Source: Lepidodermella squamata
Taxonomy: Eukaryota; Animalia; Gastrotricha
Assembly (NCBI GenBank): GCA_047495785.1
Contig: JBLDXI010000009.1
Location: forward strand, 3,348,001-3,412,000
Length of the DNA: 64,000 nucleotides
Direction of reading: 5' to 3'
Notes under the pieces: generated by a model
Seen by the model: only the letters and a program-made list of their open reading frames with translations
Told to the model about the DNA's origin: nothing
Database searches by the model: none
Translations under genes and position numbers: made by a program
Shown here: positions 11,701-63,491 of the stretch, one piece after another
Layout: each line of letters begins with the position of its first letter
Numbering within the stretch: the first letter of the stretch is position 1

Positions 11701-14700
11701 TTGATAATAGCACCATTTCCGAATCGACCAAGGTAATACCACCGCATTAATTTGCCCTTTAAAAATGGTTTTCGCACATTTGAGAAGTGTGCTCTCTACC
11801 CGGACAACACGTGGGCAGCTTTGCCCCAATTATAGGCTACATAATCATTTATAAAACCTAGCAGGGTAGGTTTCAAATTTCTGAAGAGATATTTCTGACT
11901 TCCCCACGGAAGTTGTCGGTAAGCTCAATCAGATAAAAGCGACATCGATCAGAAAATTATTTATAGAGATCAAAGACATTTTCTGTAAATTTGCTATCAC
12001 TTGACCGAGTCTTATCGAATAATCAATTTCAGCTTTTCAAATTATTTCTACTAAAAAAATTATTAAAAATCAGATAAAATTCTAAAATCCAGTTTTATGA
12101 CGATTGAAATTTTTTGTGAAAAATATCAAAAAAAAAATAAAAATTGAAACTGTAACAAAATATCGATGAATTCACTATACCTTTCTTGCCTGCTAAACTA
12201 CTGCCCTGTTCGCTGGTCAGAGCTGCGAGGTCGCCTAAACTTGGCCTCGAAACAATGACTGTAGTATGGCCGTAGCCGTCAACCAGCGACTGGGCAATAG
12301 CTCGATTTTGGTCGTTGAAATCGCCGAGCATACCGCCGCTTCCAGGCACCGGAACCGCCAGCAGGCCATTTGCACCAACAGCCGGCGGTACTACAACAGG
12401 AGAACACGGCTTGTTGAGCGATAGCAACGACTTGGCCAGTGAAGATTTATTGGTAGTCGCCGCGTTGGGCGTAGTTGAGAAAGCATCGTTTGAAACTAAC
12501 GACTCATTTTCTTCCTCCTGCGTCGGCAGCGTCGAGGCCTTGGCGTAGGAAGACGGCGCGTTGCCGTTGTTAGCAGCACCTGTTGGCCGGCGGGACGCGA
12601 GTAATTGCCGCCGCGTTTTCGCCAGTAACGACGCCCCGGCGCCATTTCGAGCCGCGCTAGGCCCGCGATAGCCCAGCACGCTTTTCTTGCCGCATAGCAA
12701 GCGTTTAAAAGCAGTTTGAAATTCGCGACTGTCGGCGCCGTAGATGAAAGGATTCATCAGGCTGTTGCAGTACCCTAGCCAGAACACAACTTTGAACAAC
12801 TGAGCGGGAATGCACTCGCAAAATGCATCTAAAAATTAGCGAAAAATTGGAACAATCAAAAAAACTCCTCCTTAAAATAATTACTAGTCGGTAGAATGAC
12901 GAAAAATGGAACCCAGCAGGCAATAAAGACTCCTACGACAATGCCAAGCGTTCGGGCTGCTCGCCGTTCCCGCTTGAACTTAGTCCAATCGATTTTTCCT
13001 GAAAAATAATTATAGGAAATTATTTGTGATAAAATGAAGTTTCAACATTAAAATTTGAAAAAATCATTAGGGGTTCTAAATCAGAAAAGACGTTTAGAGA
13101 TGACATGATATAATACAGGCACATCGACTTTGATGGGGCTAAGACTTTCCATCAGGAGTGAAATATTTAGCTTGCGACATGCTAAAGGAGGCCCGCTGCA
13201 TGCTAAAGGAGGCTATTCAGTTAAATGTGAGGGTATCATTAAATGTTGAGGGATTACAGGGAGAAAATGGTTATATAGGCTTACTTTGCCGTAGATTGGT
13301 GTCTATTGCCGCTGCGATATCGCTAGATATAGTGGAATCACGCTTGGAAGACCGCGCTGTTTGCATCTGATAATTACAGCCGCCTGCGCCGCCACCGGTC
13401 GACGACGCCGCGTGAACGCCGGTATGTATCCGCAACACGACGCCGTTCTCGCCTTTCGAGGTCATTTTCGCCTCTTTGTAACCCAGTTTCATGAACCTGA
13501 AATTATGCAAAAGTGAGTTTAAACAGTAAATTATTACTATAATAGAGATCGGTATTTTAAATTCCATAATTACATAAGGCTCTCATGAATACAACAATTA
13601 TAAAAAAATACAACTGATCTGACCTCAATTTTTTTGAGACTGAACTCAGGGGCGAATCCTAACCGCTAATTGCCCTATAGGTAAATACCGGACATTTTGC
13701 CGAAACTCAGATCAAAATGCCCAAATTCTCAAAAATTGCAGGTAAATCAGAAATAATCTTTGCTTGAAAAACCTAAACAAGATCCTTCAAAAGACTTCCC
13801 GAGGGAAAAAAAATTTCATCTATGAACGTGACGCCACGAGCATCAGTAGCCAACTCTCAAATTCTCTCAATAATAATAGAAACTGTGAAAAGTTTTGTAA
13901 TTTCAATTTTTTTAAGGGAAATTCAACTAATTATTTGAAAGTAAGCCAACTGGAGGAATCTTCCATCCTTTATCAACGATTTTACCGAAGAAAGTGAAAA
14001 TTTACTGGAGAACACCCTGAAAACCCCGATGGTAACCGATTCGGTAATTTTCGGGTTTTACCTGGTTGGATCCAATTTCTTCGGGGTTTTAATCCCATTC
14101 ACTAGAGACATACTTGAATACTATTCTTGTGCCATTTTAGATTGGTCTAAGATTTTTCTGGTCATGAGATAAGGCTTCCCCTCTCATTTTAGAGTTTCTG
14201 ATCCCTTCTCCGAGTAATTCCTTTGTTTGCGTTACTCATAGGACACGCTGTATTATAGGCATCTTGAAATTTCATGCCGCCAGGACACTGTGTACGTGCA
14301 GTAGAGAGAAAACTAATAAATAATGATCGCTCCTTACACACCCTCAATCGCTTCTTTCCATATTGGGATTTTGACGTTAATTTCGATATTTTATTAATGA
14401 GAAAATTCCCATGTACTAAGGTATTATGGCCCATACTTTTTTATATGATATTCTACTAGCCAAAAATAGCCTCGGAAATTTACAAACCGGAAGGAGGTGC
14501 TGCGGTTAAAATGTGTCGGTTCCAAAATTAATCCTGTCTAATATTAAACCTCAAATTAATAATGTAAACCTCGGATAATTGACCTTAGCAAGCGCAATAA
14601 AAAATGACAAACTAGGGCGATTTGTTTTTGTTAGTTTTAAAATTTAGACTACCTATATACAATTTTAGAGCTTCTACAGGAGAGTAAATATTTCTGGAAA

Positions 14701-15474
14701 TTAAGTGGAAATAAAGGCTTCTGCTTACCGAGTTTGTTGAATAGCTTTGAGATAGATGCGCCAATAAACAAGCATAACAACAGTACAAGGCAGAAAGAAG
14801 GAGCAGGTAGCACTGAAGATCACATAGGCCTTATCCTCGTTGACCTCACACCGGCCCGTCGACTCAACCGGCAGCGATTTACGCCAGCCAAAAAACGGTA
14901 CAACACAAATAGCCGCCGCTAATAGCCACACGCCTAAATTGATCAAAATCGCGCGTCGCTTGTTGACAATTTGATGGTGGACAAGCGGCTTTGAAACGCC
15001 GATGTATCGGTCGATTGATATAACGCAAAGGCCGTAAATTGACGCTGTACAACACAGCACGTCGATGGTAACCCACATGTCACACAGGGCCTGGCCGAAA
15101 ATCCAATATTCATCCAAAATTTCGATGGTCGTAGAGAACGGCAGGACGGTTATGCCTAGCATCATGTCAGCTATTGCCAAATTGACGATGAAGTAATTAG
15201 TCGCGGTTCGGAGTTTACGAGTTGTTACAACAGCGAGTAGGACGAGCAGATTGCCGCAAACCGTGCATAGGCATATTAGGATAAGCGGAAAGGCGATTGC
15301 GATCGAGCGAGCTGCGTCGAGAGTTGGAAATTCGGGCGGGCTCGCTTCGGGTGGTTCGGAATTAAATTCGGTATAATTAAACGCACCGCCATTCGCGCTG
15401 TTGTTAAACGCCGGCGCCATGACGAGAGAAACGTCTCGAACTAGCCCGTTGACAAAAACAGGCGTCTGGTTCAT
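8707..15474 (-). CDS. Alpha-1-adrenergic-like (aminergic class A) GPCR with a very long C-terminal tail
   Basis: Exons 14729-15474, 13285-13496, 12885-12998, 12181-12828, 10930-11315, 10032-10388 and 8707-9420 join in frame (1058 aa). Motifs: [23 protein letters not shown]5 S5.42/S5.46, ICL3 [27 protein letters not shown]. The receptor core is certain; attachment of the last three exons is inferred. Confidence 0.8.
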
Positions 15475-18400
15475 GGTGCTGATGGCGCTTATTACGGTGG
15501 CGGTGTGCGTCGTTAGAGCCGCAAAAATGCATCACGTCGGCGTCTTTTCTCGCGCACGATTATCCCCAATTTGTCAAGGGGTGGAGTCGAGCGCATATTT
15601 TATGTAAAAGTGAACGCACTTTTTGTGCCTATATGCCTAGAGTTCAGAAATCAATATACAGCGAAGGTGTTATTTGTTAGTAGTTGGATCGTTCACTACA
15701 ACTACCACTAGGCGCGAAATTCGCCCACGTAAATATGATAATGAGTTTGGGCGAGTTAATTTATACCTGTAATTTGCGCCGGTCACGGTACGCAGTTCGG
15801 CGCGCGGGCAAAAAATTGCTCTACCTATAATACAGATGAATAAAAATCGTATTGTTTATAGCGAAGCGCTGCGGGCTGCCGATTACTTTAGCCGCACCTT
15901 TTTATTAGAACTTATAACTTTACCTACATATCATATAGTATGTTTTTATTGCAGGGCTCGTCTACAATAGATAAGAACGGCAGGCGGTGATTTTTTTGCA
16001 GCGAGAAGCGCGCTAACAATAACAACAACCTAGCCTCATCGTGATGTTCGAGCTAGCGGCAATAAAACCCAACGCGCGTAGTGTATAATGCGTTCCATAT
16101 TTTGCAAGCTCGCACAAGGGGGAAGTTTCGGCGACCGATTATTGTTGTTCTTAGCGCGCATATATTCTCTGAACGAACTCAGATAACGAGGCATTGAAGT
16201 TTGGCGATTGTGCGCAAAAAACTAGCCCACAGTAAGTAATTAGACTATCAGGGTGCGTACAAAAAATGTGCGCGTCCGCTTAATAATTGTTTATTGCTAT
16301 ATAAAAAGCCGTGCTAAAAATAACAAATAATTTTTGGTAATAATGAAACTGATTGATATGATGTCTTCCAGCTTTCACAATAAAAAGAAGGTCAATACCT
16401 GCTTGGCCGGTATCTTTTTTCAAGGCTGTAATGAGATACAGAAGCGTGTAAAAATATTTGCACAAATATCAGTGAGAATTGAGAAAATATTAGGATTAAA
16501 TTAAAAAAAATCTGCAGTAAAAAAATTTCCGTGCAGCAGGTCTCTATACTTTCTTTCATCAACTCAGCGATAAATGCAACGGCGCGCATCACGTGACAGA
16601 GATCAGCTGTCGTCACAGCGTCATCGCTCATTTTTTAATGATATGATAAGGAGAAAAAATTTAATAAATATTGCAAGCTAGTGAAATTAAAACCGTGAAC
16701 TCCTAGATTCACTAAAATTTTAGTCTAACTACAGCATGGGCCCACGAGCGCACCCTCTTGAAAGCATAGCTGCTTTCCCGTTCATAAATAAAATCTAACC
16801 AAAGCGCTCTCTGTGTATATTTTGTAATATAAAAATGATGTTTAAAAATTTAGTGCTAAAAATAAAAGCAAATTATTAGAGCGCATTATCTCAACATAGT
16901 AACAATACATGAAAAAAAAAGTCGATAACATCGCTTTTCACTGGTGTTTAGTAGCGATTTTGAAAATTATTGCGCTAAGCCGGTAGCCATTGATTTAGCG
17001 AAAAATTTCCTGCCCATGTTTGCTATTGCGTATCACAAAATTCTTGCTGCTGTAATGGCCATGCAATGTAATCCTTCGTATTAGAACGAAAAGATTTCTA
17101 CTCAAGCTATAGGTGTACATAAATGTTAAAAGATTAAAGAATATATAAAAATGAACTTGATAAATAATTTTTTGGCTAAGAAAGGCGTAAGGTTATTTAT
17201 TTTATTGTGGAGCATATTCGTACATACATGGGCTATAGGCGATAAATTGTAGCCGATAAATTATTACTATACACTCGAGGATGAAAATGACGAAACGTAC
17301 AGCGTTTTAAAATGAATAAAATCGCCGTTTGTGTGCCGTTCGATGGTTCGAGTCGCGACGAAGATGCGATACGGGTCGCGAAAAACGCTCCCACGAGGCC
17401 GCCTGCAAAGCGCAGAGTGACTACAAGCATTTTTCATTCGCGTGCATATGTCGTATAGTAAAAAAAAAAAGATAATAATAATTATGTTTACAGTATTATA
17501 CTTTCCTGCCCTCTATGCTTTTACGTCGTATTAACGTGATCGTACGCAGTAAAATGTTAGAGAAGGTATTAAAATTATGAATCCGATATTGATTAGGCCG
17601 AAGTTAATGCTCGAATCACCCCTAAAGCGAGACAGCAGGTCTAGAAAACGGGACTTCGTCTATACTAGCCTAATTAAAAGGATGAAATAAAAAACAAGGC
17701 GCCAAAGTCCCGCACTATCATTTCTTCAAAAAACGTACACTCAATTCTACAAAAAAAACGTACATTTGTGCACTAAAAATTGAAATTAATAATGCAGGAA
17801 TTTGCCAGTGAATAAATGACGCTGAAAGGTGGATGAAAAAAGCACGCTGAGTGTGAAAGATATATTACTTTTGCTGAAAGGATGGGTTCAATAGAATTTT
17901 CATTCTGTCCAAAACCCAAAAGACAGCAAAAAAATTACGAATGTCAGAAACAAAATCCAAGTACTATAATATTATTGTTGATTTTCTTAGAATCAATGTT
18001 TGGAGTTTTACTTATATAAACTAATCGCGTATACGAAAAGGTGGGCAAAACCCACTTCAGGAATTTTCATAATACTATGTAGCGTAAAAAGAAAGCCGGC
18101 ATTGCGAAGCGATAAAGCTTAGTGATTTAAAAAAGGTCCAATTTATATTGCCTATCTCGGCCACTTAACTGCGATATTATTGACCAATAAATCGCAATTG
18201 AAAAAAATCACCTTATTTAGTATTGCATTTTGACAATAAAAAGATGGAAGACTTCATATTTGGAGTACAAACGTTTTTTTAGGAATATTGTAAATTATTA
18301 TATAAAACTGAGCTTATATATTATTGCTATTTATTGCAACATCGCGACAGTAATGATTGCCAATTTTTTGTGCCGTATTGCCGGGTTTAATCGATGTCTT

Positions 18401-20095
18401 GAAGAAGAACCGTAGTACATCGGATCTCGCGAAGCGTAAATTGGTTGTCTTATATGTCTCATCAAATCATTGTTAATTTTTTCAAGCATCACAAGCATTG
18501 TCGACGGTGCAATTTATACGCCAAAAAGAATAATACATATATAGAAAAATGGAAAAAGCTATATGATGAAGATAATGTTTGTTTTGGACGCCTGAAAAAA
18601 TAATGTGATATGCGACCAATAAGTCGCTCGAGTTTTTTAATTGAATTTTACGTATATAAGTAAAAGAGCCGACAATTTTATCGCAATTTTTTTTACGCAA
18701 AATAATGGAATGTATACCTATTTTCATATGAAACAGGATGATTAAATTTTACCCTATCGCCACATATAATAAGATACATAGATGCAAAGGCCAAATATCC
18801 GGCCATCCGAGTAAAAACTGACAGCGAAAAAATTTATTTTAACTGATAATAAAATATACTCGTAAATACAGTGGAAGTCACATCGTTTTAAAAGATTCTA
18901 TAAAAAATGAGACATCCATCATTATACTGAATTTTGTATCAAAGATTGCGTGCCCGAGCGGAAGCCGGCGTCAATTTGTAACTTGGTTTTTATGGCGATT
19001 ACGCAGAATTTAAGGGAAAAATCGACGTCAACAAAATTTGCGCGCATAAGAACATACATATCTCGTAAGCTAATATAATTACACTCGATATTCGACCTCA
19101 ATTTGGCAAATAATCTTGCATGATTTCTTGCGGCTGTATTGAAAATCAATTTCTCAACGGGCTTAATTCCCTCTCTGAGTCGAAACCTAAATTTACTATA
19201 AAAAGAAGAGGAAACATATAATGGGAACGTCCTAAAACTCCAAACTATAAACAAGCATGTGTCACGATTTTTCTCACACTTGCGTCATCATGCGGAAAAA
19301 TACGCGCTCCAGACAGGGTCTCAAAAAAAATAAGAGACAATGGCGTGCGTAAAATGGAAAGGATAATCTACTAATTTTCAGATAATTCAAAAATCCATAT
19401 CCAAAAAATCATGATTAATATACGAAATATAAGACGATGTGTTAAGTGCGCTCAAGACCACTTATTCAGTTATCCAGCCGTTGTTTACTTATCCATGCGT
19501 GTAACTTCCAAGGTATTTCCGCCTCTTAAGACGGCTCTGAACGATGGGCCAGCTATATTGCAAGTACGATAAAAGGTGTGAGGAAAAAAGTCGGAGTTAG
19601 GTAAATGCGCTGATTATCACCTCTCAACCATATAAAATAATTCGGGCAATAAAGTCTTTATATGGTTGAAATTTATTAACATTAAAATATTCGAGGTGAC
19701 ATCAAATTATGTTCTCACAGTATTGCAGCTTTTACGCCTGCAAATGACGTCTCAAAGAGATCAAAATTAATTCGAAACATTCTGAACAATAAGGGGCTAT
19801 AATGTATTTTCAGCAAATACTTAATGCTATTCGATACGATAATGACAGGATGCTTTTGACGAGCCGGCAAACCAACCCCCAACTATAATTTGTATCGCAA
19901 GAATTTGCACTGGAAATTTACAAAAAAGTTTATTTTATTCAAAAAACATGAAACAGGTAAAAATATAACCCATTGATTTTCACAAGATATCGCTTACGAA
20001 ATTATCATAATCACTTTTTGTTATTTCATTCAATCAGCATTCAGCCTTTGTAATTTACTACTTTTTCAATTAAACAGTATCAAATTTCAGAGAGT

Positions 20096-21542
20096 TTACA
20101 TATTTACAGGTTTGCTGTTGTTGTTGTTGTTATTGATGTTAGCGTTATTGTTTTCTTCATCCTGCCTATTATTGTTATTAGTAGCAGTCGGCTTGTTATT
20201 GAACATGCGATCGCGCCATTTGGCCCAAATGTTAGCTATCTCGTGATTACTCATCGCGTAAATGAACGGATTGGCGATTGAGTTTGAGTACGACAGCCAC
20301 ACAGCGGCCTTGAACATGTAATTAACCAAGGTCACGCCCCACTTTTTCGTTCGAAGTGTGCGCTCAAACACGCCGATTGAGTCAAGCAGGAGAAGGCAGA
20401 AAAACGGCGACCAGCAAATGATGAAACAGCCTAAAATTCGGCCGAGTAAAACTTTAGTTCGAAGAGCTACGCCTTTTTTCGGCTTCGACTTCTCCTCGCC
20501 TTTCACCGCTGATTTTTGTGATGAAACAGCTTTATGAAGCTGGTGGTGGTGGTGGTGATGGTGATGATGATGGTCATCATGTGAGCCTGAATGTTCGTTG
20601 TTGACCCCGTCCTTTTCAACGGGAAATGGCCACAGTTGGGTGACAAGTAACGGCGCAGCTTGGCACAACTGGTCCAGTTGCTTTTTAGCCCCGAAGTAAA
20701 TTCTCAAATAAACAAAAGACATGACAACACAGGGTAGCCAGTAAGAAATCGCGCTTGAAACCAGGGCGAAGATCGGGTTCACCTCAAACCGGCAAATTTC
20801 GGTTGTTGAGTTGAATAAAGCTGGTTTGCCTGATTTCGAATGAAAGTGAAGATGAACTGGAACGTGGGATAGGACAAAGCTGACGATCCATGCTAATATC
20901 ACAATGCCAATGGATACTCGGCTTGTCATCAGTGAGCTGTAGCGAAGTGGCTTGAACACGGCGATGTAACGCTCGACGGCTATGCACATGATGCCGAGTA
21001 AGGAAGCCGTGCAGAAGAAAATGTCGTTGCCGATGAAAGTGTCACAGCCGAACTGGCCGAATGGCCAGTAGCCAAGTGCGTTTTGCACGATGTGTAGCGG
21101 CATGACAATCAGGGTGACTAATAGATCGGCAACGGTGAGTGCGAAAACAAAAATTAGATTCGTTTTTTTCGACCTCAACCCTCGGACAGCAAACAGGCTA
21201 AAAAAACAGAAAAGATTCACTTTGTTGCTATGGAAAATTCAATTTAAGCGTCCTTAGCAACCGATGATTCAAACTTTCGTACCTTCCTAACACGAGGAGA
21301 TTTCCTACGAGTGAAAATAACAGAATGAAAATTTGGATGAGGGTTTCCACGGCGAGAATGATTGATTGCCAACTGCCGTCGTTGCCGTCAGACAGCGGCA
21401 TTTTTTGCGTTAAAAGGATATCAGAAGGCGGGGCTTTCGTACTGCGCCTCAGCACCCCGAACGGTACAACAGGCGGTGCTGTCCAATGAGAATTGTAAAT
21501 CTCATCGTCGATTATACCACTTGTAAACTGGATGACGGACAT
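20096..21542 (-). CDS. D1-like dopamine/biogenic-amine receptor, paralog A
   Basis: Exons 21283-21542 and 20096-21197. Motifs: GYWPFG..C, D3.32 in NDIFFCTAS, ERY, TM5 SSAIS, CWSPFF, NPFIY. Poly-His run in ICL3. Confidence 0.8.
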
Positions 21543-22378
21543 GTTTTAGTTTTCTAAAAATGTTAGCCTAAAAAATGGGTTTTTAGGAAAACTTATAAGC
21601 AATCGAGAACGATTATCGGCTCGCGCTCTGCTTAGATATATAAGGTTTTCATTTATGACGAGTCAAAAACTGCGTAAGCTCACAAGGTATGCGATGTAGG
21701 CGTACATGAGGGAATCCGTTGTTTGAGGCGTGAGGCGCATGATAACTGCCGTGAACAAGGTAATTTCGCCTCGCTCACACTTTCATCGCGAGGCGACGCA
21801 TATCGCATTTCTGCCGAGCGAAAAACGCTACTCAGTTTTCGCGTGAGCCGCGCTGCGCAAAATACACTGATGATTATAATTAGCGGCTCAAACACAAGGG
21901 CGAGATCGGCGTTATTATCACCTGTGCTGTGCTGGCGAAAACAACGGGATGATTTTGATTCGATCATCAATTCTCACGGCGCGCCCTGATCGAAATCGGA
22001 TCGTCCTCTAGCAAACAACTCGTGGACCAAAAAAATAAAAAATACGGCTGGGAAGATTATCGAATCATTACGGTCAGATGAATTAAAAACAAAAAAGTTC
22101 AATTATCCTTTTAATCATCAGCGTAAAAAAAATATAAAATAAGTCTGTGCATTGTTTTTACTCTCAGTAAAAAATCACGACATGAAAATTGTAGATGTTC
22201 TCAAATATCGCGTTTGTAAAAAAAAATTAGGAGACAAGAACGTATGAGAAGAACGCCTTGATTCCGCATATTTTGAAAAATTACTGTATAATTTCCGTGA
22301 AAATTTAATATAGCATTTCAAGACTCTTCCCACTGGCAATTTGTGAATTCGAAGATTTTGATACATCATAACATGGCA

Positions 22379-24928
22379 TCAAGTTACTGGAAGATGCGTT
22401 TTCATTTGAAGTTCGCCATAGCGACTACAGTCGCATGAGCTTTTCGTCGATTTGGAAGGCGTTGTAGCTTGGTTACTATTATGTCCGTTAGCTAGTTGCG
22501 TCGGGTTGTTTTGGCTGTCTTTACGGCTGGCGACCATGGGCGACGTACTCGCTGTTGTTGTATCGCTGTTGGCGGTCTTGAAGCAACGCTGCTTGCTGCG
22601 ATTCAGCTGGAAGCATTTCGCGGCACAGTAGGTCTTGAAGCGACTCCATAGCGGGTCGAATTCGCGGTTGCTCAGGGCATACTAAAATGAAAAGTAATTA
22701 TTCAAAATTCAGTTTTAAATTTTTTCATTTTTTAGCTTAATTTTAAATTTTTTTAAATTTAAAATTTAATTTCCATTTTTTTAATATTGGAATCGTAATA
22801 TTTCAACCGGTCATAATATTTGACAGTCTTTCGATGCTTATTCGCCTACTTCTTTGAAGTGGCTTTAAATTGGCTGGGTTGCGTCTTTTACTCTTCCACC
22901 CGACATTCTAAATTCCAATGTTAAGAATCAATGTTCAAAGTATAAGACACGCATGTTCGCCATTCAAACGTGCTAATTTCCTCTGATTTTTCGCGCACTT
23001 CCTACAGTGAAAATTTTGTCCCGAGAAAATGATAATGATTCATATGAGATTGACCTATATTTCCCAGAAGCATGCGGCTAATGAGAGGAATCGATTATTG
23101 GCAAAATTTGGGCGGAATTCGCTTATATTTTAATTGGTTCTCTCAAAGGTCCTTCCATCTTGTATTATCGAAATTAAAATTAAATCTTACAATGAAAGGA
23201 TTTGCAGTTGAGTTAAGATAGCCGAGCCATAGCGCGGATTTGAAGAGCCAGCCGTATTTCTCCGGATCGAGGGGCTCGGCTAAGAAGGCCGTGTCTACAA
23301 CCAGGAGAGTGAAGAAAGGAAACCAACACAACCCGAAACAGCCGAGAATTCGACCTGAGGAAAAAATTACTAAAATTTGACAAAATTAAATGATTATATC
23401 CGGCCTACCTAAAGTGACTTCAGTACGTAAATTAGCCGATTGATTCGAACCTTTTCGCCTAAATGAAAATTTCGACAGCGATAATTTGGACCATTTTGAC
23501 CCGCCGGTGGCTCCAGTTGAACTTCTTGATTGAGCAGGCGCCGATAATTGGCGAGAAGCCAACAGTTTACCCCTGAAATAAAATGGCGTGGAAATGCTGG
23601 AAAAATAAGCGATTTTAATGACTCACTTTTCTTCGTTATTACACGTGCTTAGATGCCGGTTAAATTTAACATCTCGCCCCGTGCTAATCTCACGGGTATC
23701 CATGGTGTTCGATGTAGTGCTCGCCCCAGGTGCCTCATTCTTTCGCTCAGATCCGCCGCGCGATTCTACCGATGACGGTTTATAGCTAACCGATGAGGCC
23801 TTCGCCAATGCGTAGAGTTGCCGCTTCGCAGCCACGTACATTCTCGCGTAAACAAATAGCATAATTCCGGTTGGGAACCAGAAAGAAACCATGGAAGAAG
23901 CTAGGGCGTAGTAAGGATTCACGTTGAACCCGCACACTGTTATATCATCCTCTTGATTTGCCGAACTGTTGCCAACCTGGCTCGAATTTCCAGCAACTAT
24001 GTGCCAGTCTAATTGAACGGGAATGTAGGATATTGCCAGGCTTAACACCCAAGCCATGCACGTCATTGAAACAGCGACTTTTGTCGTCATTAAAGAGCTA
24101 TATCGGAGGGGTTTAAATACGGCTACGTATCGTTCCATCGCTATGGTGATGATGCCAAGCAGCGAGGCTGTACAAAAGAACACGTCATTTGCGATGAAAA
24201 TTTTGCAGAACGAAGCGCCGAATGGCCAGTAGCCGCTTATATTTTGGACAATGTGAAAGGGCATGACGCAAATTGCAACTAGAAGATCGGCTGATGCGAG
24301 GGACATTACGAAGATGACGTTCGATTTCTTGGCTCGTAATCGATTAAACATAGCCAAGCTAAAATTTAAAAAAATGAAAAATTAGGGGCTCAAAATATTG
24401 GAATAATTTTTCCGAGAAAACTCGCTCAATAAAATTCAGAAAAATCCTCCTTAAATTTTTAAATTTTTTATTTTTTTATAATAATATTTAATTTTTTGTA
24501 TGATTTCCATTATTTTATTTTATTTTTGTTTATTTTATTATTTTTATTTTTTGGGTAGAAACCATCGTTTTCCCAACTAACCTCAAAATGACGAGAACGT
24601 TTCCAACAATTGACAATACAACCACGAGAATTTCTAGTATAGCCTCAGCAACGATGGTCCAGTCAGCTCCGTTCTGTTTCGCGTCATTGCCAGATCTCGA
24701 AAAATCACTCGCGAGACCTGAACTGTTGCGAAAGGTGCCAAAGACTTGCGAGGCGAAGACAATGTAATCGAGGTTAGCGCTATCCTCTTGCTGCCGATCG
24801 AAGCCACTCGTCGTGTCATCATAGTCGCTGATGAAAAGCGGCAAGGCAGTTGTAGACACCCTGGGTCTTAGTACCGTGATAGACGGTGGCGGCGGTGGGG
24901 TGGTGCTGATTTTTGATAAACTCCTCAT
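22379..24928 (-). CDS. D1-like dopamine/biogenic-amine receptor, paralog B
   Basis: Exons 24582-24928, 23627-24358, 23409-23572, 23191-23354 and 22379-22681. Motifs: D1-type ISYIPVQLDWH, NDVFFCTAS, ERY, YALASSMVSFWFP, CWFPFF, WLGYLNSTANPFIY. Confidence 0.82.
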
Positions 24929-43033: not shown

Positions 43034-43346
43034 CCGGGTCCCCCACAGAGCAGAAGGCTTCAATGCAGGATAAACCCAAAAAGCGGTGCAAACGCCACGC
43101 AACAATAAATCGAATTAATTACGATAAAATTCTGCGTAATTTTCTGAATATGGGCTCATCATAACTTTAAGAGCCCGGCTTATGAATTTTGGAAAATTTT
43201 CGAAAATCGATTTTTGGTGTGAAAAGCTAGAATAGCTGGCCATCCCGTTAGTCCATTGGTTGAAAATCAGAGGCTGAGCGCCTGCTGGGAGGACTGTAAA
43301 GTGCGTTTACCCTGCTTTGAAGCCTTCTGCTTAGTGGGGAACCCGA
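43034..43346. mobile_element. Degenerate MITE-like/foldback element
   Basis: Imperfect ~42-bp inverted repeats at 43034-43075 and 43305-43346 (core GCAGAAGGCTTCAA) around ~230 bp of non-coding sequence. No TSD resolved. Confidence 0.55.
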
Positions 43347-43869: not shown

Positions 43870-46800
43870 TCAAGCCAGGCGATGATCGTTGGCCTTCATT
43901 TTTTCTTTCAATTTCGAGATCACATCACGCAATTCGGCGCTTTCACTTTCAAAACTCGCATCCCTCAATACAGAGTTCCAAGATTTTAGGGATATGTCCT
44001 GCACAAATGTCTCATAATCATCGATGATGGTAAAAGTATGCCTTGCCACGTCTTCATAGTATTTGGCGCCACTGCATAGTAATGACTCGCTTTTTTTCAA
44101 AACGCTCAATAAGGCACCTGAAATGCGGACATTATTCACAAATGAGCAGTGCAGAAGATGCTTGAGGGTATCTGACTTCAACTTCTCACTCATTTCACGC
44201 TTTTGCCAGTCATTTTCAACAAAAAATTCGTCCATGAAGTGGGGGGTAATGATTTTCAAAGAGATTCGATCATCGATCAGGTAAGCGGAATCGCGCACCA
44301 TTGCCGAGAGATTCGAGTTGATAATCAGATAGAAGTCATCGATTCCGTACACAGAAGCACAAACCGAAAGGAAGTCGCGAAGTTCAGAAGCTGATACAGA
44401 CAAGATGATGTATTGGAATTTGACCTTTTCCGGATTAGAACTCAGGTAGTGAAAAAGATCTGGCATGAAACAAGTTTCAGTGACAATGATTTTCACATTT
44501 TTTCCTTGTTTTTGGAAAAACGTTTCTTTCGTCGAAAACTTTTCGCGAAATATTTTTCTCGGTATTACAATTTCACCAGAAGAGAAATACAAGGCATCGG
44601 CATCACTTTCGTTGATACTAGCAATGCTCATTTGGGACAGATGAAACAGACCAAAATGCTTCAGAACACCGTTGAGTAGTTTCGTGAAGTCTTGCCAATT
44701 TATCAACACATCGCTGCCCTTCTTCCAAAAATCTTCGAGGAAGAAAAAATAACGAGCAGTAAATAACGAGTCGTGCAGTAACGGAGACTGTTGATATTTA
44801 AATAGCAGATCAGAGAATCTTGAAAAACTAAAAGATAGTCGGCAAATGTCAGCTCTGCTGTCAATACTAGGGAGTATATGGGCGAAGAAAAAGAGAATTA
44901 CAGCGAACTGAGATGCTAGCACATGGCCAGTTTTTCCTTTCAAGAGTGAATGCGTAGTGGCTGATTTGCGGAGATACCTGACCCAGGACCTGCTCACAAT
45001 GTCGTCCTCGCACTCATCGAATTCGATGTAGAAAAATTCATCGCCAACTAGGCTGAAATCGAAGACTACGCCGTCATATCTCCTGAATTGTGTCGTGAAC
45101 GCGCGAGATTGCCGAGCTAGACTCGCAGCTTGGTTCAGATATCGATCATAGCACTTTACTATGCCCAACTGATTAACAGGCGATCGAAAGGTCGAGGATG
45201 AATTTTCTCGCGCTGGGTTGCTTCTTCGGGATTCGTTCGATTCTGATTGCTGATTTTGCGATGAAGATTTCCCTTTAGGCCCTGGGTTACTTTCGATCTG
45301 AAATTTAATTTTGATTAAAAATTGATTTCAACGAAAATTTCAAATTACATCGCCACAGAGTTGCAACAAATTGACAGCGAAAAGGACGGGGAGTCGCATT
45401 GCAACGACTCGATAGAAGCACTGATCAGTTATTCTTGGTCGCTTCGTAGGTTGGCAATTTCGAATTGAACCTGAGGATTTGCCGATTTGACGTTGGACAT
45501 GCGCATCGTACAAACTCTAAATAAAATAATAAAATCATGCAATAAAATCAAGCATCGATGTCGAATAGTAAGCCCTTACCTTTGAAGAGTCGACGAACTC
45601 GGAAATGGGAGTAGGGGGCTCTTTCGCAAAGACGGACGTCAAAAGAACGGCTTCATCGATAGCCCCAGCCTCGTATGAAAGGCAAGTCGAATCGGCTTTG
45701 GTGCACTTGCCAAAAATTGATTTCTCAGACCCAAGGCTTTGGGTAATGCGAAACCAATCGCAAAACTCAGGGTATCTGATGTTGAAGTCGGTCAACCTCA
45801 TTAAAGAGAACGCTATTAACGAACCAAAGAAAAATCGATTAGACAAATCCTTCGAAAATTGGAAACAAATCAGACGATTAATTTATTTTTATTCTCATGC
45901 ATTTCTGACCGGTAACAGTTAACATTTAACATTTTGAGCAAGAAAATCGCCGCGGCAATTACGGCACATTTCAGCGTAAGAAAACGGGTTTTTAACAATC
46001 GATTAGGCATAAAAAAACAATTTGTAAAATGTCACTGTCATCTCGCAGCACCAAAGATAATTTTGATCAGTATAAGCCGTGCCCTCAAAATCGAACAACA
46101 CTATTTACAGCAAATCAAGAAGTTGATTGATAGAATCAGAAGAAGAAAGAAAAGTTGAATATCAAAACGATTGTAAAAGGCACATTGTAGAGAGTTCAAC
46201 GAAAAACCGAATGACCAAATCATCAAATGAGGTCACAGCGCTCGATGGAAAGTCGCGACAAGGAATCCATGTCCAGCTCAACCGCAAAAAACCGGGGAGC
46301 CATCCTTGGCAGGTGCGACAAATTTGCGATGAACGTGCACCCAGACTTGGACGTAGTGATAGAAAATGGCTTAGAAAATGGCTATAAAAAAAATGGCTTA
46401 GAATCGATAATTTTTAGATTTTTGATGATTGCTCACCTGGAAACCGCTGGCTTCGCAATAGTAGGCCGCTCTGCCATCGGCGTTGAAACGCCTGATCAGC
46501 AAGTGAGCTCGTTTTTTTCGCGGTTGCCAGGCAGGATTTTTGCTTGATTCGAAACGCCGCTGTCTCTGCTTCCCGGCTTTCTTCGAGCGATTGTTTCGTT
46601 CTTCGTCGTACTCAGCGTCATATTGCGTCTCGAAGTCTTCATCGGTCTGGAAACCTTCGTCGAATTCCGAGCACGGATTCTGCCAATCAACTTCGAAGTC
46701 TTCAATTTCCATCGGCTTGACGTCCTGCTAAAAAAAATGGAAATTAAAACTGGTTTTTAGTAAAATTTTCGGCTTGAAACTAACTTTTTCGGTTTTAACG

Positions 46801-47162
46801 CCGACAACAGGCGGATTCCATGGTCTAGCAGCCGTTTGTTTCGATTCAGCATCGATTCCAGGCGTTCCAGATCGCACAACATCGGCCCATGTCTAGAAAT
46901 GATAAGAAATCAACAAAAATAGCGAGTTTCCGTTATTTTCGCCTACCTTGGTTTTGTAGAGCTCGGGATCCTGAGGCTTCTCCATGACGAATTTGGCCGT
47001 TAACTCATCGGCTTCTTCGATGCTGTCAGACTCATAGTGAAGACTCGATGACGAGTCAGTCTCGTAGTCGAAGTCGCCGCAAGTCGTATTTTCGCAAGTC
47101 TCACCTCGAGACGAAATGTAGCTGCAACCGGAAAGACCAGAATCAACGCGTTCAACAGTCAT
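43870..47162 (-). CDS. Orphan 7-exon gene encoding a predicted 2A-linked polyprotein (~390 aa + ~469 aa)
   Basis: Exons 46947-47162, 46785-46892, 46437-46727, 46283-46381, 45580-45849, 45349-45516 and 43870-45297 join in frame through phase-0 GT-AG introns. The 46283-to-45849 junction is the least certain. No known domain recognised. Confidence 0.65.
45277..45369 (-). other. 2A/StopGo ribosome-skipping motif split by a 51-bp intron
   Basis: TTG TTG CAA CTC TGT GGC GAT | GTAATT...TTTCAG (45298-45348) | ATC GAA AGT AAC CCA GGG CCT encodes LLQLCGD-IESNPGP, an exact match to G-D-(V/I)-E-x-N-P-G-P. Confidence 0.88.
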
Positions 47163-49211: not shown

Positions 49212-50681
49212 TCAATATGGCAAATTTGTTTGAATCGCAACATCGCGCATTCTCACAATTTCCCACTCGTCATCGTTTTCATCATCATCGTCATCGCCGC
49301 CATTTTGAGCTGAGCTGCTCGGACCAGGTTTAGCCACCTTAGCCGGGGTTCCACTTGTAGATTCAGACGCTTTCCTCCGCGGCGAGCTTCTCGTCGGCGA
49401 TCTCACGGGTGATTGTTGATAACGCGATTGGCGATGTAGCAACTCCGAAAACGGGCCTAAACTTTGATCGGCAACACTTCGGCTGAGATTTGCATGCTCG
49501 TCATTTTCCGCATGCGCTTTTTTCAATATTTCAATACGTTCGCTGAGCAATTTCGAAACCGGCTCGTCTTTGGCCATTTTACGCAAACCACGGCCGAAAT
49601 GCGTCTTACCATGCAGGACCAGCTCGACACACTGCTGCGACGATGTGTGATGGGTCGATCCTAGTAGGCTAACCCCGGCTAGGTTTGATGCCTTTGCCGC
49701 GACGCAGTGAAGATTTCGCAAAAATACGTAATCGCCGGGCTGAAGAGATTGAGCGGTCGGGCAATGATCGTCGAAAATGACTACAGGCACCATGTAGCTC
49801 GAGAACTGGTCATACAAATCCTGGTCCATTTTCACCGAGGCGAGCTCTGACGGGCTGATAATAGCGAGGGGAGGCAGCATCCTGGCCTGTCTTTGGCTAG
49901 TCATCGAGCCATCGGTCACAAATAACACGCATCGATCACTCGATTTGACGCCGATTCCAATAACGAGACACGCTGTGTTGAAATAATTGTTCAGCACAAC
50001 AGATTCGATCCATTTAACATCATCGCGATTTATCGGGGTGGCAGGTGCTGCGACGATAGCTGGTAATTTTCTGGGTGATGGCGACGTTTGAGGTGACGTG
50101 AAAGTCGTGTGATTTCGGACGAACCAGTTGCGTAACTCAACCGCGCGGGCTTTGTCCGATTCTGAGAAGGTGAATTCAGCTGAGCCTGATCGAGGGGTGA
50201 TTTCTGACGACGGATCACCGTCGACAACGAGCCACGAGAAGCCGAACGAACTGACGGCCTGGAGTTTAGACAGCGGGTGGGTCGGGCCGGATGGCACGAT
50301 TGACGTCGGCTCGTCACGGGCTGGTTTCACGTTGATACGGTGAAGCCGCACAACATCGCCAACTCGACGTATTGTTGGGAAGGTTTTGAAGTCGGAATTG
50401 AACAAAACGCAAACCTGATTGAAAAAATTGAAATAAAATATCCACCTTAAATAATATTTTTATACCAATTTAGCTGTCGGGTCTCGTGGATCCAGCGAGT
50501 CGTCGACAATGGAGAACATCTGAAAAAAATCCGTGCCACGCGACCTTTGTGGTTCCTTGTAAAATTTGACAACAGCCCATATGTTCACTCTGCTTGAAGA
50601 CGCCGATAAATCCGCAAGTCTCGTGTACACGTACTGCTGCGAAGCCGCTCCGTGTTGACCCGGAGCTACGGCTTTCGACAT
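49212..50681 (-). CDS. POT1: Protection of telomeres 1-like, OB1+OB2 only (472 aa)
   Basis: Exons 50466-50681 and 49212-50414. OB1: YVYTRLADL..VNIWAVVKFYKEPQRSRGTDF..SIVD, FPTIRRVGDVVRLHR, FTFSESDK..ELRNW. OB2: FDDH..LQPGDYVFLRNLH, LHGKTHFGRGL. A disordered tail follows. Confidence 0.88.
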
Positions 50682-59126: not shown

Positions 59127-60056
59127 TTATCAAAATTCTATGGTCAAGTAATATCAACAAGATAGGAGGCGAGGAGAAAACATATTTTATCAAGAATGAG
59201 AGGAGGTCTTAGTCTTAGTCTTAGGTAGTACTCCCGTTTAATTCGAGGTTCTGTCAGATGTCAGGAATGGTAAGAAGGCCGCATAGAACTGACAGGTTTA
59301 TTTTCATATCATTTCTTCAATAATATCAACGCTTAGTCATTGTTTCTCTTACATCAGTAAATCTTCAGAACTTTTACTAACAATAACATCCTCAAGGGAT
59401 TAACCCCAGATGTGAAAGGTAACAGGTAACAGGTAAAGTGTGACAGGTGAAGTTCTCAATCGAATATAACAACTTCAGCAACAACTTTGACCTGACCTTT
59501 AATCGAAAAGGCATGCGAAAAGGTGATAAAAAGAAGCCGAGTCGATTTGACCTTTCAGGAGTAGGGCGTGAGGCGTTTTCTTAATTGAACGATCTATGGT
59601 CTTGCTGCAGCACTACAGAGTAAAATCTAATTTTGAACAACGAGCCGCAGGTCGTGACTTGTGCCTTGTGCCTCCTTTGCGGCTATGGCATCGGCTAAGG
59701 CGATGCCGAACAGCAGCAGAACGCGTTCCTCTGGCCGTCGACACAGGTGTGCAAGGCAAGGTCAAGGGCATACGGTGACACTTTTTTCAAAAAATAGTCG
59801 AAAGAAAATTACATTTTATGAATAGCGCTGTTGAAAGGTTTCAACAACTTTATGAATTTAATTAATTGCAGTTTTATTTATCATACGTGAAAATGAAAAA
59901 ATGGCCATAAAAATACGTTTCTTGCTTTTCATCTGCTAGGCTGCTCATTCAAGCGCGTTATTTTCAGCGAATCCATGTTAGCAACGAGTTAAAACCGACT
60001 TCAGTGGACAGTTGTTTTCCTCCATTTTAACTCCAAATTTCGCTTCTCGAACAGTT

Positions 60057-60800
60057 ATGGCTATACTTTTTTCAGTGGTTGCCCGTGGCACCACTATTCT
60101 GGCTAAGCATGCCAGCTGCTATGGAAATTTTACTGAGGTTGTCGAACAAGTTTTCACTAAATTGTCTCCTGAGAATGGCGAGCTGATCTACCAATTTCAA
60201 AACTACTACTTGCCCTACATCTGTGAGGACAAAATCGTTTTCTTGGCTATCATCGATGCAGATTTTGACCATGGTTTGGCTTTTCAGTTCCTACGTGACA
60301 TCAAACAGCGTTTTCAGTCAACTTATGGTGCTCGTGCACAAACCGCTCTTCCCTACGCGATGCAGCCAGAATTTTGTCGCATTCTTGAGGCTCAAATGAA
60401 CTACTTTTCTGTTCAGCGTCGCCAATCTGTTCTTGTCAGTGATCATTCAGAAACTCCCTCTGTCGACGTCAATCAACGCGCTGCCTTAATGGGGTCGAGT
60501 AAGAAGGACAAAGTCGAAAAGTTGCGTTCACAAGTCAATGAGGTTCAGCAAGTTATGGTGCGGAATATCGATACAGTTATCGATAGAGGGGAGCGCTTAG
60601 ACTTGCTGGTAAACCGAAGTGAAGAGCTGGAAAATACATCTCTCATCTACCGTAGAAGTGCAGAGCATGTCAGGAGGAAGATGTGGTGGAAAAATGTCAA
60701 AATGTGGATTATTCTAATCCTTGTCATCGCAGCAGTTCTTGCGTTAATTGTTACCTTGACATGCATTTCCACTGCAGGTCACTGTGGAGTAAGCAAATGA
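60057..60800 (+). CDS. VAMP7: Vesicle-associated membrane protein 7 (longin R-SNARE), intronless CDS
   Basis: MAILFSVVARGTTILAKHA longin start, AQTALPYAM, SNARE motif MVRNIDTVIDRGERLDLLV, MWWKN, and a C-terminal TM helix. Confidence 0.95.
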   Translation: MAILFSVVARGTTILAKHASCYGNFTEVVEQVFTKLSPENGELIYQFQNYYLPYICEDKIVFLAIIDADFDHGLAFQFLRDIKQRFQSTYGARAQTALPYAMQPEFCRILEAQMNYFSVQRRQSVLVSDHSETPSVDVNQRAALMGSSKKDKVEKLRSQVNEVQQVMVRNIDTVIDRGERLDLLVNRSEELENTSLIYRRSAEHVRRKMWWKNVKMWIILILVIAAVLALIVTLTCISTAGHCGVSK

Positions 60801-61141
60801 ACCATCCAACCAGCATAATCCTGTTATCACACCTGTGTCATCCAATACTGCTGTCATAAGTGAAACTGTACAAATTACGAACACCAAATTTTTAATACTA
60901 TGATCGACCTGGAGGTTTTATATCGCCTGCAATTCTCACAGAGACTTTTATTATCACTTACGCTTGTATCGGTCGCTAAATTAAGGCATTATGAACCAAA
61001 AATTTTAAATATCTATGACGGTGGAAGTCTTATTTCTAATTTGCAATTTTAAATCAATTGTTGATAAAAATTGTGTAAAGCAAGTGTTTTTTGCCTCTTA
61101 GTGCTTTTTACCTGTGATATCAACTATTCCACGTGCCTAAA

Positions 61142-63491
61142 ATGTCTCCCCCAATGATGATGGCTCCTCAAATCATTCTGTTGAAGGAAGGTACCGATAC
61201 CTCCCAAGGTAAGCCTCAAGTTGTCAGCAACATCAACGCTTGCCAAGCCGTGGTTGACGCTGTTCGCTCAACCCTCGGCCCTCGTGGTATGGACAAGATG
61301 ATCGTCGACGAGCAAGGCCGCGCCACAATCTCAAACGACGGTGCTACTATCATGAAGCTGCTCGACGTCGTCCACCCGGCCGCGAAAATGCTAGTCGACA
61401 TCGCCAAGGCTCAAGATGCCGAAGTCGGTGATGGCACAACCTCTGTGGTCTTGCTTGCCGGCGAATTCCTCCGCCTCATCAAGCCCTACATTGAGGAGGG
61501 CATTCATCCTCACATCATCACTCGCGCGGTCCGCAAGGCAACTGAAATGGCTGTCAAGCGTATTCGCGAGATTGCCGTCGTTATCGACAAGGCTGACAAG
61601 GCGTAAGTTTGACATCTTGAAATGTCAGATAATACAATTCTGTACTCTAATATTTATTTGATTTTACAATTTTGTTGGTGTAATTTGATTTTCATCTGCT
61701 GGATTTCGAATTGATTTTCCTCCTAAGTGAATTTATTGATGCTAGAAGAAACCAGGCGTGTAAAATTTTTAGACGAGACTAAATTGATGGATACTTCAAG
61801 TGCTACGAATTACGATTCGAACAGCTGGCTAATATACAGATAAACAAATTGAGAAGGAGGAATACCCAGAATGTTCTAAGCTTCAAAGATAGCCTGAGTG
61901 AAAAACAATTCTTGATTTTGTTTTACAGTGAGCAGCGTCGTCTTTTGGAGAAATGTGCCGCGACTTCGCTGAACAGCAAGTTGGTCGCTCACTCGAAAGA
62001 GTTCTTCGCGAAAATGGTCGTCGACGCCGTTTCTCACCTTGACGATCTGCTGCCCCTTGACATGATCGCCATGAAGAAAGTCGCTGGCGGCGCTCTTGAA
62101 GACTCGATCCTCGTATCTGGTGTCGCTTTCAAGAAGACCTTCAGCTACGCCGGTTTCGAGATGCAGCCGAAGAAGTACAAGGACGCGACCATCGCCCTGT
62201 TGAACATTGAGCTGGAGCTCAAGTCTGAGAAGGAAAACGCCGAGGTGCGCCTGAAGTCGGTCGACGAGTACAAGGCCGTTGTCGACGCTGAGTGGCGCAT
62301 TTTGTACGAGAAGCTCGAGGCACTGCACAAGGCCGGCGTCACCGTTGTGCTGTCGAAGCTGCCCATCGGCGATGTTGCCACGCAGTGGTTCGCCGACCGT
62401 GACATGTTCTGCGCTGGCCGCGTTCCGGAGGACGATCTGCGCCGTGCCATGAAGGCTTGCGGTGGTTCGATCCAGACGTCGGTGTCAAATCTGACCAAGG
62501 ACTTGCTCGGCCATTGCGACGTGTTCGAGGAGCGTCAAATCGGCGGTGAGCGTTTCAACATTTTCACCGGCTGCCCGCACGCCAAGACGTGCACGTTGAT
62601 TCTGCGCGGCGGTGCCGAGCAGTTCATTGAGGAGGCTGAGCGGTCGCTGCACGATGCCATCATGATTGTGCGCCGCATGCGCAAGAACGACGCCGTTGTT
62701 GCTGGCGGTGGCGCTGTTGAGATGGAACTGTCGCGCTTCCTGCGCGACTATGCTCTGTCCATTGCAGGTAAATTATTACGATTTATGAGACCTATCAAGG
62801 AAACTTGAATATTGAGAGCGAGTGAGAATTCGGTATTTATTTAAAATTCTCGAGGTTAATTGAATAGTTAACCAGGCGGAGTCCAATTTTGACCGTTGAG
62901 ACAACTCAATTAATTCGTCGGTGTAAAAAGATAATTTTTTGGTTTTTTGATTTTCCGATCCAATTTCCGCATTTCGTTTGAATTTCGAAGTTTTGTCTTT
63001 TGGATTCAATTTGATCTCAAAATCGACGTACTTATTTTCTAATTTTTCCAATTTTCCCAATAAATTTGACAACTGCACTTCATAAAAAATTTGAAATCTT
63101 GATGAATACTTTTTTTTAATTTAATTTTTCTAACCATGCCAATTTTTTATATTTAGGTAAAGAGCAGCTGTTGATTCTGGCCTTCGCCCGTGCTTTGGAA
63201 GTCATTCCGCGCCAACTGAGCGACAACGCTGGTTTCGACGCGACCAACATGCTGAACAAGCTGCGCCAGAAGCACTCAGCCGCCGGCGGTATGTGGTTTG
63301 GCGTTGATGTTGCCAGCGAGTCGATCGCCGACAACTTCGAGCGCTGCGTCTGGGAACCGGCCGTTGTCAAGATCAACGCGCTGCAGTCGGCCTCCGAGGC
63401 CGCTTGCCTTATTCTCAGTGTCGACGAGACTGTCAAGGCGCCGAAGGCTCACAACCCGTCCGACCAGGCTCGCGGTCGCATGGGCTTCTAA
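61142..63491 (+). CDS. CCT7: T-complex protein 1 subunit eta
   Basis: Three exons. Motifs: [78 protein letters not shown]. Confidence 0.97.

Follow-up and report, generated by a model that had tools for sequence, protein, structure and literature searches.

StopGo (2A) sequences are common in RNA viruses and rare in cellular genes (PMC12846837). Cellular 2As have been documented in non-LTR (long terminal repeat) elements of trypanosomes and metazoans (PMC3708506), as well as in NLR genes of sea urchins (Roulston et al. 2016, PMC4981915), and a hidden Markov model survey of UniProt and MGnify proteomes, including proteogenomic predictions, has predicted 56 + 478 eukaryotic 2As (Rao et al. 2025, PMC12338488). 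Here we describe a 2A peptide in a gene, termed gene B, on the minus strand of a 64,000-nt stretch of the genome of the gastrotrich Lepidodermella squamata (assembly GCA_047495785.1, contig JBLDXI010000009.1, positions 3,348,001 to 3,412,000; hereafter the window, whose own numbering is used throughout). The gene B 2A belongs to an already known kind, hundreds of cellular 2As being predicted. What is unusual in gene B is the intron that lies within the 2A, between D12 and I13, the presence of a tandem paralogue that lacks the 2A and, probably, to judge from the gene model, the location of the 2A between two substantial proteins of an ordinary spliced gene. The 2A literature that we searched contains no discussion of introns inside 2A coding sequence.

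Comparison with described 2A systems

Class-A viral 2As of the type of F2A from FMDV (the virus of foot-and-mouth disease), with the Leu-rich upstream motifs 2/6 of Li et al. 2026, share with the gene B peptide the DIESNPGP core, Gly at position 11 and Leu at positions 6, 7 and 9. Unlike these, the gene B 2A is nuclear-encoded, carries an intron at D12/I13 and is flanked by orphan proteins instead of capsid or replicase. The 2A-like signal sequences of the sea-urchin NLR genes also reside in a host gene and, as in gene B, have a brief hydrophobic segment immediately ahead of GD(V/I)ExNPGP (PMC4981915). Their dual fate (skipped or fused) is conceivable for gene B if an internal Met is used; however, the gene B 2A most likely lies 113–136 residues into the open reading frame (ORF), and no DEATH, NACHT or LRR domain was found downstream of it (Pfam, E<=10). 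The 2As of APE-type non-LTR retrotransposons resemble that of gene B in being class-A, in residing in a eukaryotic genome and in being located near the 5' part of the ORF (Odon et al. 2013, PMC3708506), whereas gene B has no APE or reverse transcriptase (RT) domains, is single copy in the window and contains spliceosomal introns.

A 2A motif assembled across a predicted splice junction

On the minus strand, removal of a 51-nt GT-AG intron (45348..45298) fuses ...LLQLCGD to IESNPGP... in frame. The initial annotation had reported this intron and its in-frame join to a terminal exon, and the coordinates are right, the terminal exon comprising 475 codons. Translation of 45408..45349 (minus) gives V-V-A-M-R-L-P-V-L-F-A-V-N-L-L-Q-L-C-G-D, of which M-R-L-P-V-L-F-A-V-N-L-L-Q-L-C-G-D forms the C-terminal end of exon 2 (45516..45349), and exon 3 continues from 45297 as I-E-S-N-P-G-P-K-G-K..., remaining open for 475 codons up to the stop at 43872..43870. 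The intron begins with gtaatttg, ends with aaatttcag, contains two in-frame stops and has a GC content of 0.18, compared with ~0.47 in the flanking exons. It is in phase 0 and splits the 2A between D12 and I13; if it were retained, the frame would read V-I-stop after D12. The features of gene B, all on the minus strand, are as follows:

45580..45801, minus: exon 1, ATG 45801..45799, 74 codons, donor AAG/gtaagg
45517..45579, minus: intron 1, 63 nt, gtaagg...ttatttag, GC 0.29, in-frame stop inside
45349..45516, minus: exon 2, 56 codons, open from acceptor to donor, with a basic patch TKRPR
45399..45397, minus: internal Met of exon 2
45384..45349, minus: 2A positions 1–12, LFAVNLLQLCGD, in exon 2
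45298..45348, minus: intron 2, 51 nt
45277..45297, minus: 2A positions 13–19 (IESNPGP), start of exon 3
Gly 45282..45280 / Pro 45279..45277, minus: predicted skipped bond
43870..45297, minus: exon 3, 475 codons plus the stop 43872..43870

The first Met of the exon 3 ORF is codon 223, preceded by 222 open codons, and therefore an upstream exon is needed and the frame must be entered by splicing. All GT-AG pairs 35–500 nt apart on both strands of the window were enumerated and each junction was translated (n=146,802). GD[VI]ExNPGP arises at one of these junctions, which is the one described here. A single other donor in the enumeration supplies a D, but right behind an in-frame stop, and another GT in the last codons of exon 2 shifts the frame into an immediate stop, as read from the sequence. 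The expected numbers per 64-kb six-frame translation are 0.0016 for contiguous [VI]ExNPGP and 1.7e-6 for GD[VI]ExNPGP. The sole other NPGP in the six-frame translation, TGHTNPGPFSP at window position 49817 (plus frame 1), is antisense to a POT1 exon and, being without D/E/Leu context, is judged a chance occurrence.

Intron 2 resembles the other short introns of the window in size and site type. These are 51–58 nt long with a GC content of 0.14–0.35, GTA/GTG donors and T-rich YAG acceptors, and are found in the CNNM, POT1, ankyrin and G-protein-coupled receptor (GPCR) genes, as well as in NHP2, where one is confirmed by alignment with a homologue. On the basis of the sequence, the presence of a 2A motif across the splice junction is statistically secure, and the motif is canonical class-A.

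An earlier proposal was that the motif exists only after splicing and is hidden from six-frame scans. The full D[VI]ExNPGP indeed needs the junction, and a strict search for this pattern misses it. However, exon 2 supplies D12 and the upstream Leu-rich part of the 2A, and the remaining 7/8 core residues are contiguous in exon 3, such that IESNPGP (45297..45277), which lies wholly within this exon, is found by a plain six-frame scan. The suggestion that this class could be systematically missed was overstated, since the proteome survey with proteogenomic entries already predicts its 56 + 478 eukaryotic 2As (PMC12338488); the limiting factor for finding such 2As is annotation, not the type of scan.

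Gene structure and the tandem paralogue

Intron 1 unites exons 1 and 2 in phase 0 and without a stop, and the ORF of gene B comprises 45801..45580, 45516..45349 and 45297..43873, that is, three exons and 605 codons. The coding character of the exons was assessed by three-frame analysis and by codon-usage log-odds, trained on 19 ORF/exon segments of recognisable window genes (Pfam- or homology-supported; 4,875 codons). The segment 45882..45580 scores +0.17 in frame, compared with -0.42 and -0.25 in the other frames, which is like the training genes, and exon 3 also shows coding-type codon usage. The strong donor of exon 1 leads in phase into exon 2, where 40 codons are open ahead of the internal Met; by our estimate, a phase match with an open frame would arise by chance in ~3% of cases. 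A candidate 5' (trans-)splice acceptor, ttaatag/, ends at 45813, 12 nt ahead of ATG 45801, and an AATAAA is located at ~45893, upstream of the gene B start. It may be speculated that the two together reflect an operon-like or trans-spliced arrangement.

Upstream of gene B lies its tandem paralogue, gene A, which has no 2A:

46223..47162, minus: gene A, tandem paralogue of gene B, without 2A
47162..46947, 46892..46785, 46727..46437 and 46381..46226, minus: gene A exons, stop 46225..46223

The introns of gene A are 54, 57 and 55 nt long, and the predicted product is an acidic protein (isoelectric point 4.9) of 257 amino acids (aa), the last exon being the least certain (codon score +0.02). The first exons of genes A and B align over residues 38–63 of both (46% identity, pairwise E=2e-5). 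This 26-residue block is equally far from both ATGs, and both exons end 9–11 residues further on, at AAG/gta. The alignment is thus in the same register in both genes, which therefore points to ATG 45801 as a genuine start and to two tandem paralogues. The 2A and the large orphan exon are present in gene B only. A single long gene spanning 47162..43870 was rejected, since exon 46727..46437 most simply runs via the 55-nt intron into 46381..46226 and its stop; the paralogy of the first exons, which sets a new start at 45801, also counters it. An in-frame AAG acceptor at 45850 leaves residual room for one long gene as a possibility.

Residues of the peptide

Numbered as in F2A, the gene B peptide reads L1 F2 A3 V4 N5 L6 L7 Q8 L9 C10 G11 D12 I13 E14 S15 N16 P17 G18 P19. 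The initial annotation had recognised a complete 2A motif, and this is borne out for class A: the core DIESNPGP (after intron removal), G11 and the Leu-rich hexapeptide LLQLCG directly ahead of the core are all present, and, starting at Pro 45279, the ORF runs on in frame for 469 codons until it stops at 43872. For F2A we take the sequence to be LLKLAGDVESNPGP, and by comparison with this FMDV peptide 11/14 residues of the gene B 2A are identical, the other three being conservative.

When F2A and P2A were subjected to deep mutational scanning, L6, L7, G11, D12, E14, N16 and the NPGP were essentially intolerant, and L9 was among the most sensitive positions (bioRxiv 10.64898/2026.09.24.754024). 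The same scan found that K8 of F2A tolerates four substitutions, including Q, that V13 tolerates I alone, and that F4 accepts aromatic or basic residues only (bioRxiv 10.64898/2026.09.24.754024). The gene B 2A matches these active peptides in that it keeps all 10 intolerant residues (L6, L7, L9, G11, D12, E14, N16, P17, G18 and P19), in that Q8 and I13 are substitutions tolerated in F2A, and in that S15 is as in F2A. Leu-rich upstream hexapeptides are associated with D12 (PMC12846837), and GDIESNPGP is a classical core, for which examples from iflaviruses and cypoviruses are tabulated with ~99% 'cleavage' (PMC8623073).

Relatives of the peptide

IMG/VR was searched with a degenerate DNA pattern encoding LLxLCGDIESNPGP, and both IMG/VR and a metagenome collection with an exact pattern for the gene B 14-mer. 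The degenerate pattern occurs in four IMG/VR contigs, with LLELCGD... or LLKLCGD...; contigs L005 and L007 carry LLELCGDIESNPGP, and L006 and L008 carry LLKLCGDIESNPGP. Because L005 and L008 (~9.9 kb each) encode an RNA-dependent RNA polymerase (RdRp) or helicase together with CRPV-type capsid ORFs, we assign them to dicistro-like Picornavirales. The 2As of the dicistro-like contigs agree with that of gene B at 13/14 residues, including C10 and the I13/S15 combination, but have E or K instead of Q at position 8 and belong to viral genomes without introns; outside the 2A, no likeness between these contigs and gene B was found.

The exact 14-mer pattern found nothing in IMG/VR and a single metagenome contig, L009 (JAAUYG010090731.1), which carries LLQLCGDIESNPGP. 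As in gene B, this identical 14-mer belongs to a spliced eukaryotic gene, with the exon located between ttccag/ and /gtgagt; unlike in gene B, the 2A is uninterrupted by an intron. The first Met stands 10 residues ahead of LL, the same spacing as in gene B, although the L009 ORF reaches further upstream. The codons of the two 14-mers differ at 10/14 positions, including TCC versus AGT for Ser, and therefore the identity between L009 and gene B is at the peptide level. Such peptide identity despite codon change is no more than suggestive of constraint. Outside the 2A, exon 3 included, L009 has no similarity to gene B. The contig contains tandem copies of the 2A exon (9047–9256 and 11380–11706, minus), one of them intact, LLQLCGDIESNPGP, and the other, 2.3 kb upstream of the intact copy, decayed to LLRLCDDIESNPGP. 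Among the same-strand downstream ORFs, one of 501 aa has weak P-loop NTPase (AAA/NPHP3_N/Schlafen-like) matches below the Pfam cut-offs, and L009 possibly represents an immune-type gene family with 2A leaders.

Predicted products

The predicted products of gene B are an upstream protein of 136 aa (15.2 kDa), with the non-tryptic C-terminal peptide LPVLFAVNLLQLCGDIESNPG, and a downstream protein of 469 aa (54.2 kDa, from Pro 45279). The latter begins with a Ser/Asn/Gln-rich linker of ~40 aa, followed by a mixed alpha/beta body with one hydrophobic 19-mer (Kyte-Doolittle hydropathy, KD, 1.88). The protein collections searched do not contain the window's own proteins. The exon 3 product matched no Pfam family even at E<=10, no PHROG and no PDB sequence, and had no match in a word-indexed collection of 5.8 billion entries (candidates of 0.55–1.75x its length). 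An exhaustive phmmer search of 1.84 billion representative proteins, with no length limit and therefore able to detect fusions, returned none at E<=0.001, and no relative was found in IMG/VR. Gene B exon 1 and the gene A exons had no match in Pfam or PDB, and gene B exon 2 none in Pfam. Single-sequence AlphaFold2 modelling of the 469-aa product gave a pLDDT (predicted local distance difference test) of 37 and a pTM (predicted template modelling score) of 0.24; because of this low pLDDT a fold search was not justified, as its matches would mean nothing.

Proposed mechanism and alternative interpretations

We suggest that gene B (45801..43870, minus) is a nuclear gene whose three exons contribute an ORF of 605 codons, with a 2A that forms where exon 2 is joined to exon 3. 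As this ORF is translated, the nascent chain LFAVNLLQLCGDIESNPG would occupy the exit tunnel, the ribosome would fail to form the Gly-Pro bond, thereby freeing the 136-aa (15 kDa) upstream protein ending in ...NPG, and would then go on from the Pro to produce the 469-aa (54 kDa) protein. Such a StopGo event, yielding 15-kDa and 54-kDa proteins from one ORF, is the most likely function of the locus, and one that we consider probable. It assumes splicing of both introns as modelled, expression of the gene, translation from ATG 45801 and skipping with appreciable efficiency, all of which we infer from the sequence.

Several observations weigh against this proposal. The codon score of exon 2 is ambiguous to neutral (-0.05), as would be expected for a short linker, and position -3 is a T at ATG 45801 but a G at the internal ATG 45399. 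Val at position 4 is the sole doubtful residue of the peptide, and skipping efficiency may be reduced because F4 of F2A tolerates aromatic or basic residues only. Full 2A activity can need at least 30 aa of native upstream context (PMC12846837), and since it can depend on more than 30 aa of such sequence, the efficiency is not predictable. Predicted eukaryotic 2As are mostly located near the ORF start or N-terminus, where their role is unclear (PMC12338488). Moreover, no orthologue of the downstream product was found in the protein collections or IMG/VR.

The location of most eukaryotic 2As near the ORF start (PMC12338488), a layout shared by the sea-urchin NLR leaders (PMC4981915), raises the alternative that the 54-kDa protein starts at Met 45399, for example when the acceptor of exon 2 is a site of trans-splicing or of transcript initiation. 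In that case the 2A would be a 23-aa hydrophobic leader that is skipped off or, if skipping failed, serves as a signal or anchor. Consistent with this, the Met is positioned 10 residues before LLQLCGD (23 codons ahead of the skip site), the same spacing as in L009, the leader is hydrophobic (KD19 1.74), position -3 of ATG 45399 is a purine, and the lineage appears to trans-splice. However, exon 1 is coding, its donor, phase and frame run directly into exon 2, and this donor has nowhere else to go. In addition, the would-be 5' untranslated region (UTR; 45516..45400) contains no stop in the 2A frame and, in another frame, has two upstream ATGs opening a 25-codon upstream ORF. We therefore regard the leader arrangement, including a signal or anchor role, as rather unlikely, and the model with an internal 2A appears well ahead of it. 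Alternatively, the 2A could be an inactive or weak relic of a virus- or retroelement-derived cassette that survives in an orphan gene, expressed or not, in which case the main product would be a 605-aa fusion, or none. Neither orphan half of gene B showed a relative in the collections searched for it, F2A needs an aromatic residue where gene B has V4, many of the cellular D(V/I)ExNPGP motifs tested by Odon et al. were inactive (PMC3708506), and the L009 copy LLRLCDDIESNPGP shows that such cassettes decay. This explanation appears unlikely, as 10/10 intolerant positions are intact, the 475-codon exon is still open with coding-type codon usage, and the 14-mer is identical to that of L009 though 10/14 codons differ, which points to peptide-level constraint.

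We also considered a fragment of a mobile element or endogenous virus, such as part of a picorna-like polyprotein or the N-terminal end of an ORF from a non-LTR retrotransposon. Indeed, picorna-like viruses and APE-type non-LTR elements are the best-known carriers of 2As (PMC3708506), and the closest peptide matches include the dicistro-like contigs. Yet no RT, endonuclease, capsid, helicase or RdRp domain was found in gene B or in the window ORFs of at least 150 aa, nor an APE domain in or near gene B, and there is no relative in IMG/VR. No second copy of gene B exists within the window, and convincing terminal repeats are lacking: candidate transposon ends were rejected, the flanking inverted repeats being short, AT-rich and 74–81% complementary, and judged to be chance. 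Rather, gene B has two genome-typical spliceosomal introns and shares its exon 1 with the neighbouring host paralogue, which makes an element or viral origin of this kind very improbable and agrees with the original view of a nuclear, spliced gene and not a fresh viral insertion. Gene B is located among host genes such as sideroflexin, NHP2, POT1, PDE, CCT7 and the GPCRs. Finally, a chance motif created by a convenient GT-AG pair is effectively excluded. By extrapolation, 100 Mb of six-frame translation should contain a few heptapeptides of the IESNPGP type; however, 1/146,802 junctions gives the motif, this junction is the only frame-preserving one for the ATG-less 222-codon stretch, and the upstream LLxLxG element is present too, for which we estimate a joint probability of at most ~1e-4 per genome.

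Genomic setting

The window, a segment of a metazoan chromosome, is densely packed with genes, among them those for CNNM, sideroflexin, NHP2, POT1, PDE, a DDHD lipase, VAMP7, CCT7 and GPCRs; Rfam and tRNA scans of it were empty. An inverted repeat of 44 nt (43035–43078 / 43302–43345; 86% complementary, 223 nt apart) is located ~500 nt 3' of the gene B stop and could be a hairpin-forming or MITE-like (miniature inverted-repeat transposable element) sequence. Three rhodopsin-family GPCR genes lie within 10 kb (14725–24357, minus; 7tm_1 E=1e-38 to 1e-50). At 1374–2851, a MADF-domain ORF (minus) adjoins a DDE_Tnp_4 (PIF/Harbinger-type) transposase ORF (plus), the two probably forming either a domesticated pair or a Harbinger-like DNA transposon.

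The best named matches of NHP2 and CCT7 are from molluscs, brachiopods, hemichordates and insects (56–79% identity), and CCT7 is nearest to transcript contigs of SRR12835387/8, from a close relative (93% identity at the aa level, 84–86% at the nt level), its named hits being scattered across many phyla at 75–79%. Two transcript contigs of a closely related species (L002:1-19 and L003:1-13) have different 5' leaders, ...TTTGTCTAAG and ...AATTTGAG, both of which meet the CCT7 5' UTR exactly at the window's TTAG/ acceptor (~61088–61100, plus). The pattern points to spliced-leader trans-splicing in the lineage, or else to alternative first exons; judged by eye, both the style of the introns and the putative spliced leaders recall nematodes or tunicates. 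In a relative from an ENA metagenome (L004:2856-5400; 87% aa identity in CCT7), the VAMP7-CCT7 order of window 60012–63488 is kept. CCT7 of L004 is intronless, whereas that of the window has two introns of ~330 and 380 nt, far above the 51–58 nt class.

Implications

A further reading combines three ideas, namely that the intron acts as a switch inside the 2A, that gene B is a fusion and that the 2A is an alternative to an operon; we consider it quite unlikely that all of these hold together. If the switch were true, spliced mRNA would give both proteins by StopGo, a retained intron (...CGD-V-I-stop) would give a near-identical upstream protein alone, and splicing, not transcription, would set the ratio of two unrelated proteins. 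If the fusion were true, gene B would have arisen from a duplicated host first exon and a formerly independent gene beginning with a 2A leader. Jointly, these would make the 2A an operon alternative in a trans-splicing animal.

For genome-level scans, the locus carries a caution, namely to search for the NPGP-proximal half alone and then to seek a splice acceptor. Since eukaryotic 2As have already been predicted in their hundreds, the impact of the finding is limited. Interruption of the motif by an intron would be proof of long residence in the nuclear genome, and the tandem paralogue without 2A is a ready-made reference for tracing the origin of such a gene. If active, the gene B peptide would be a clean natural case of a host 2A serving as a true bicistronic device.

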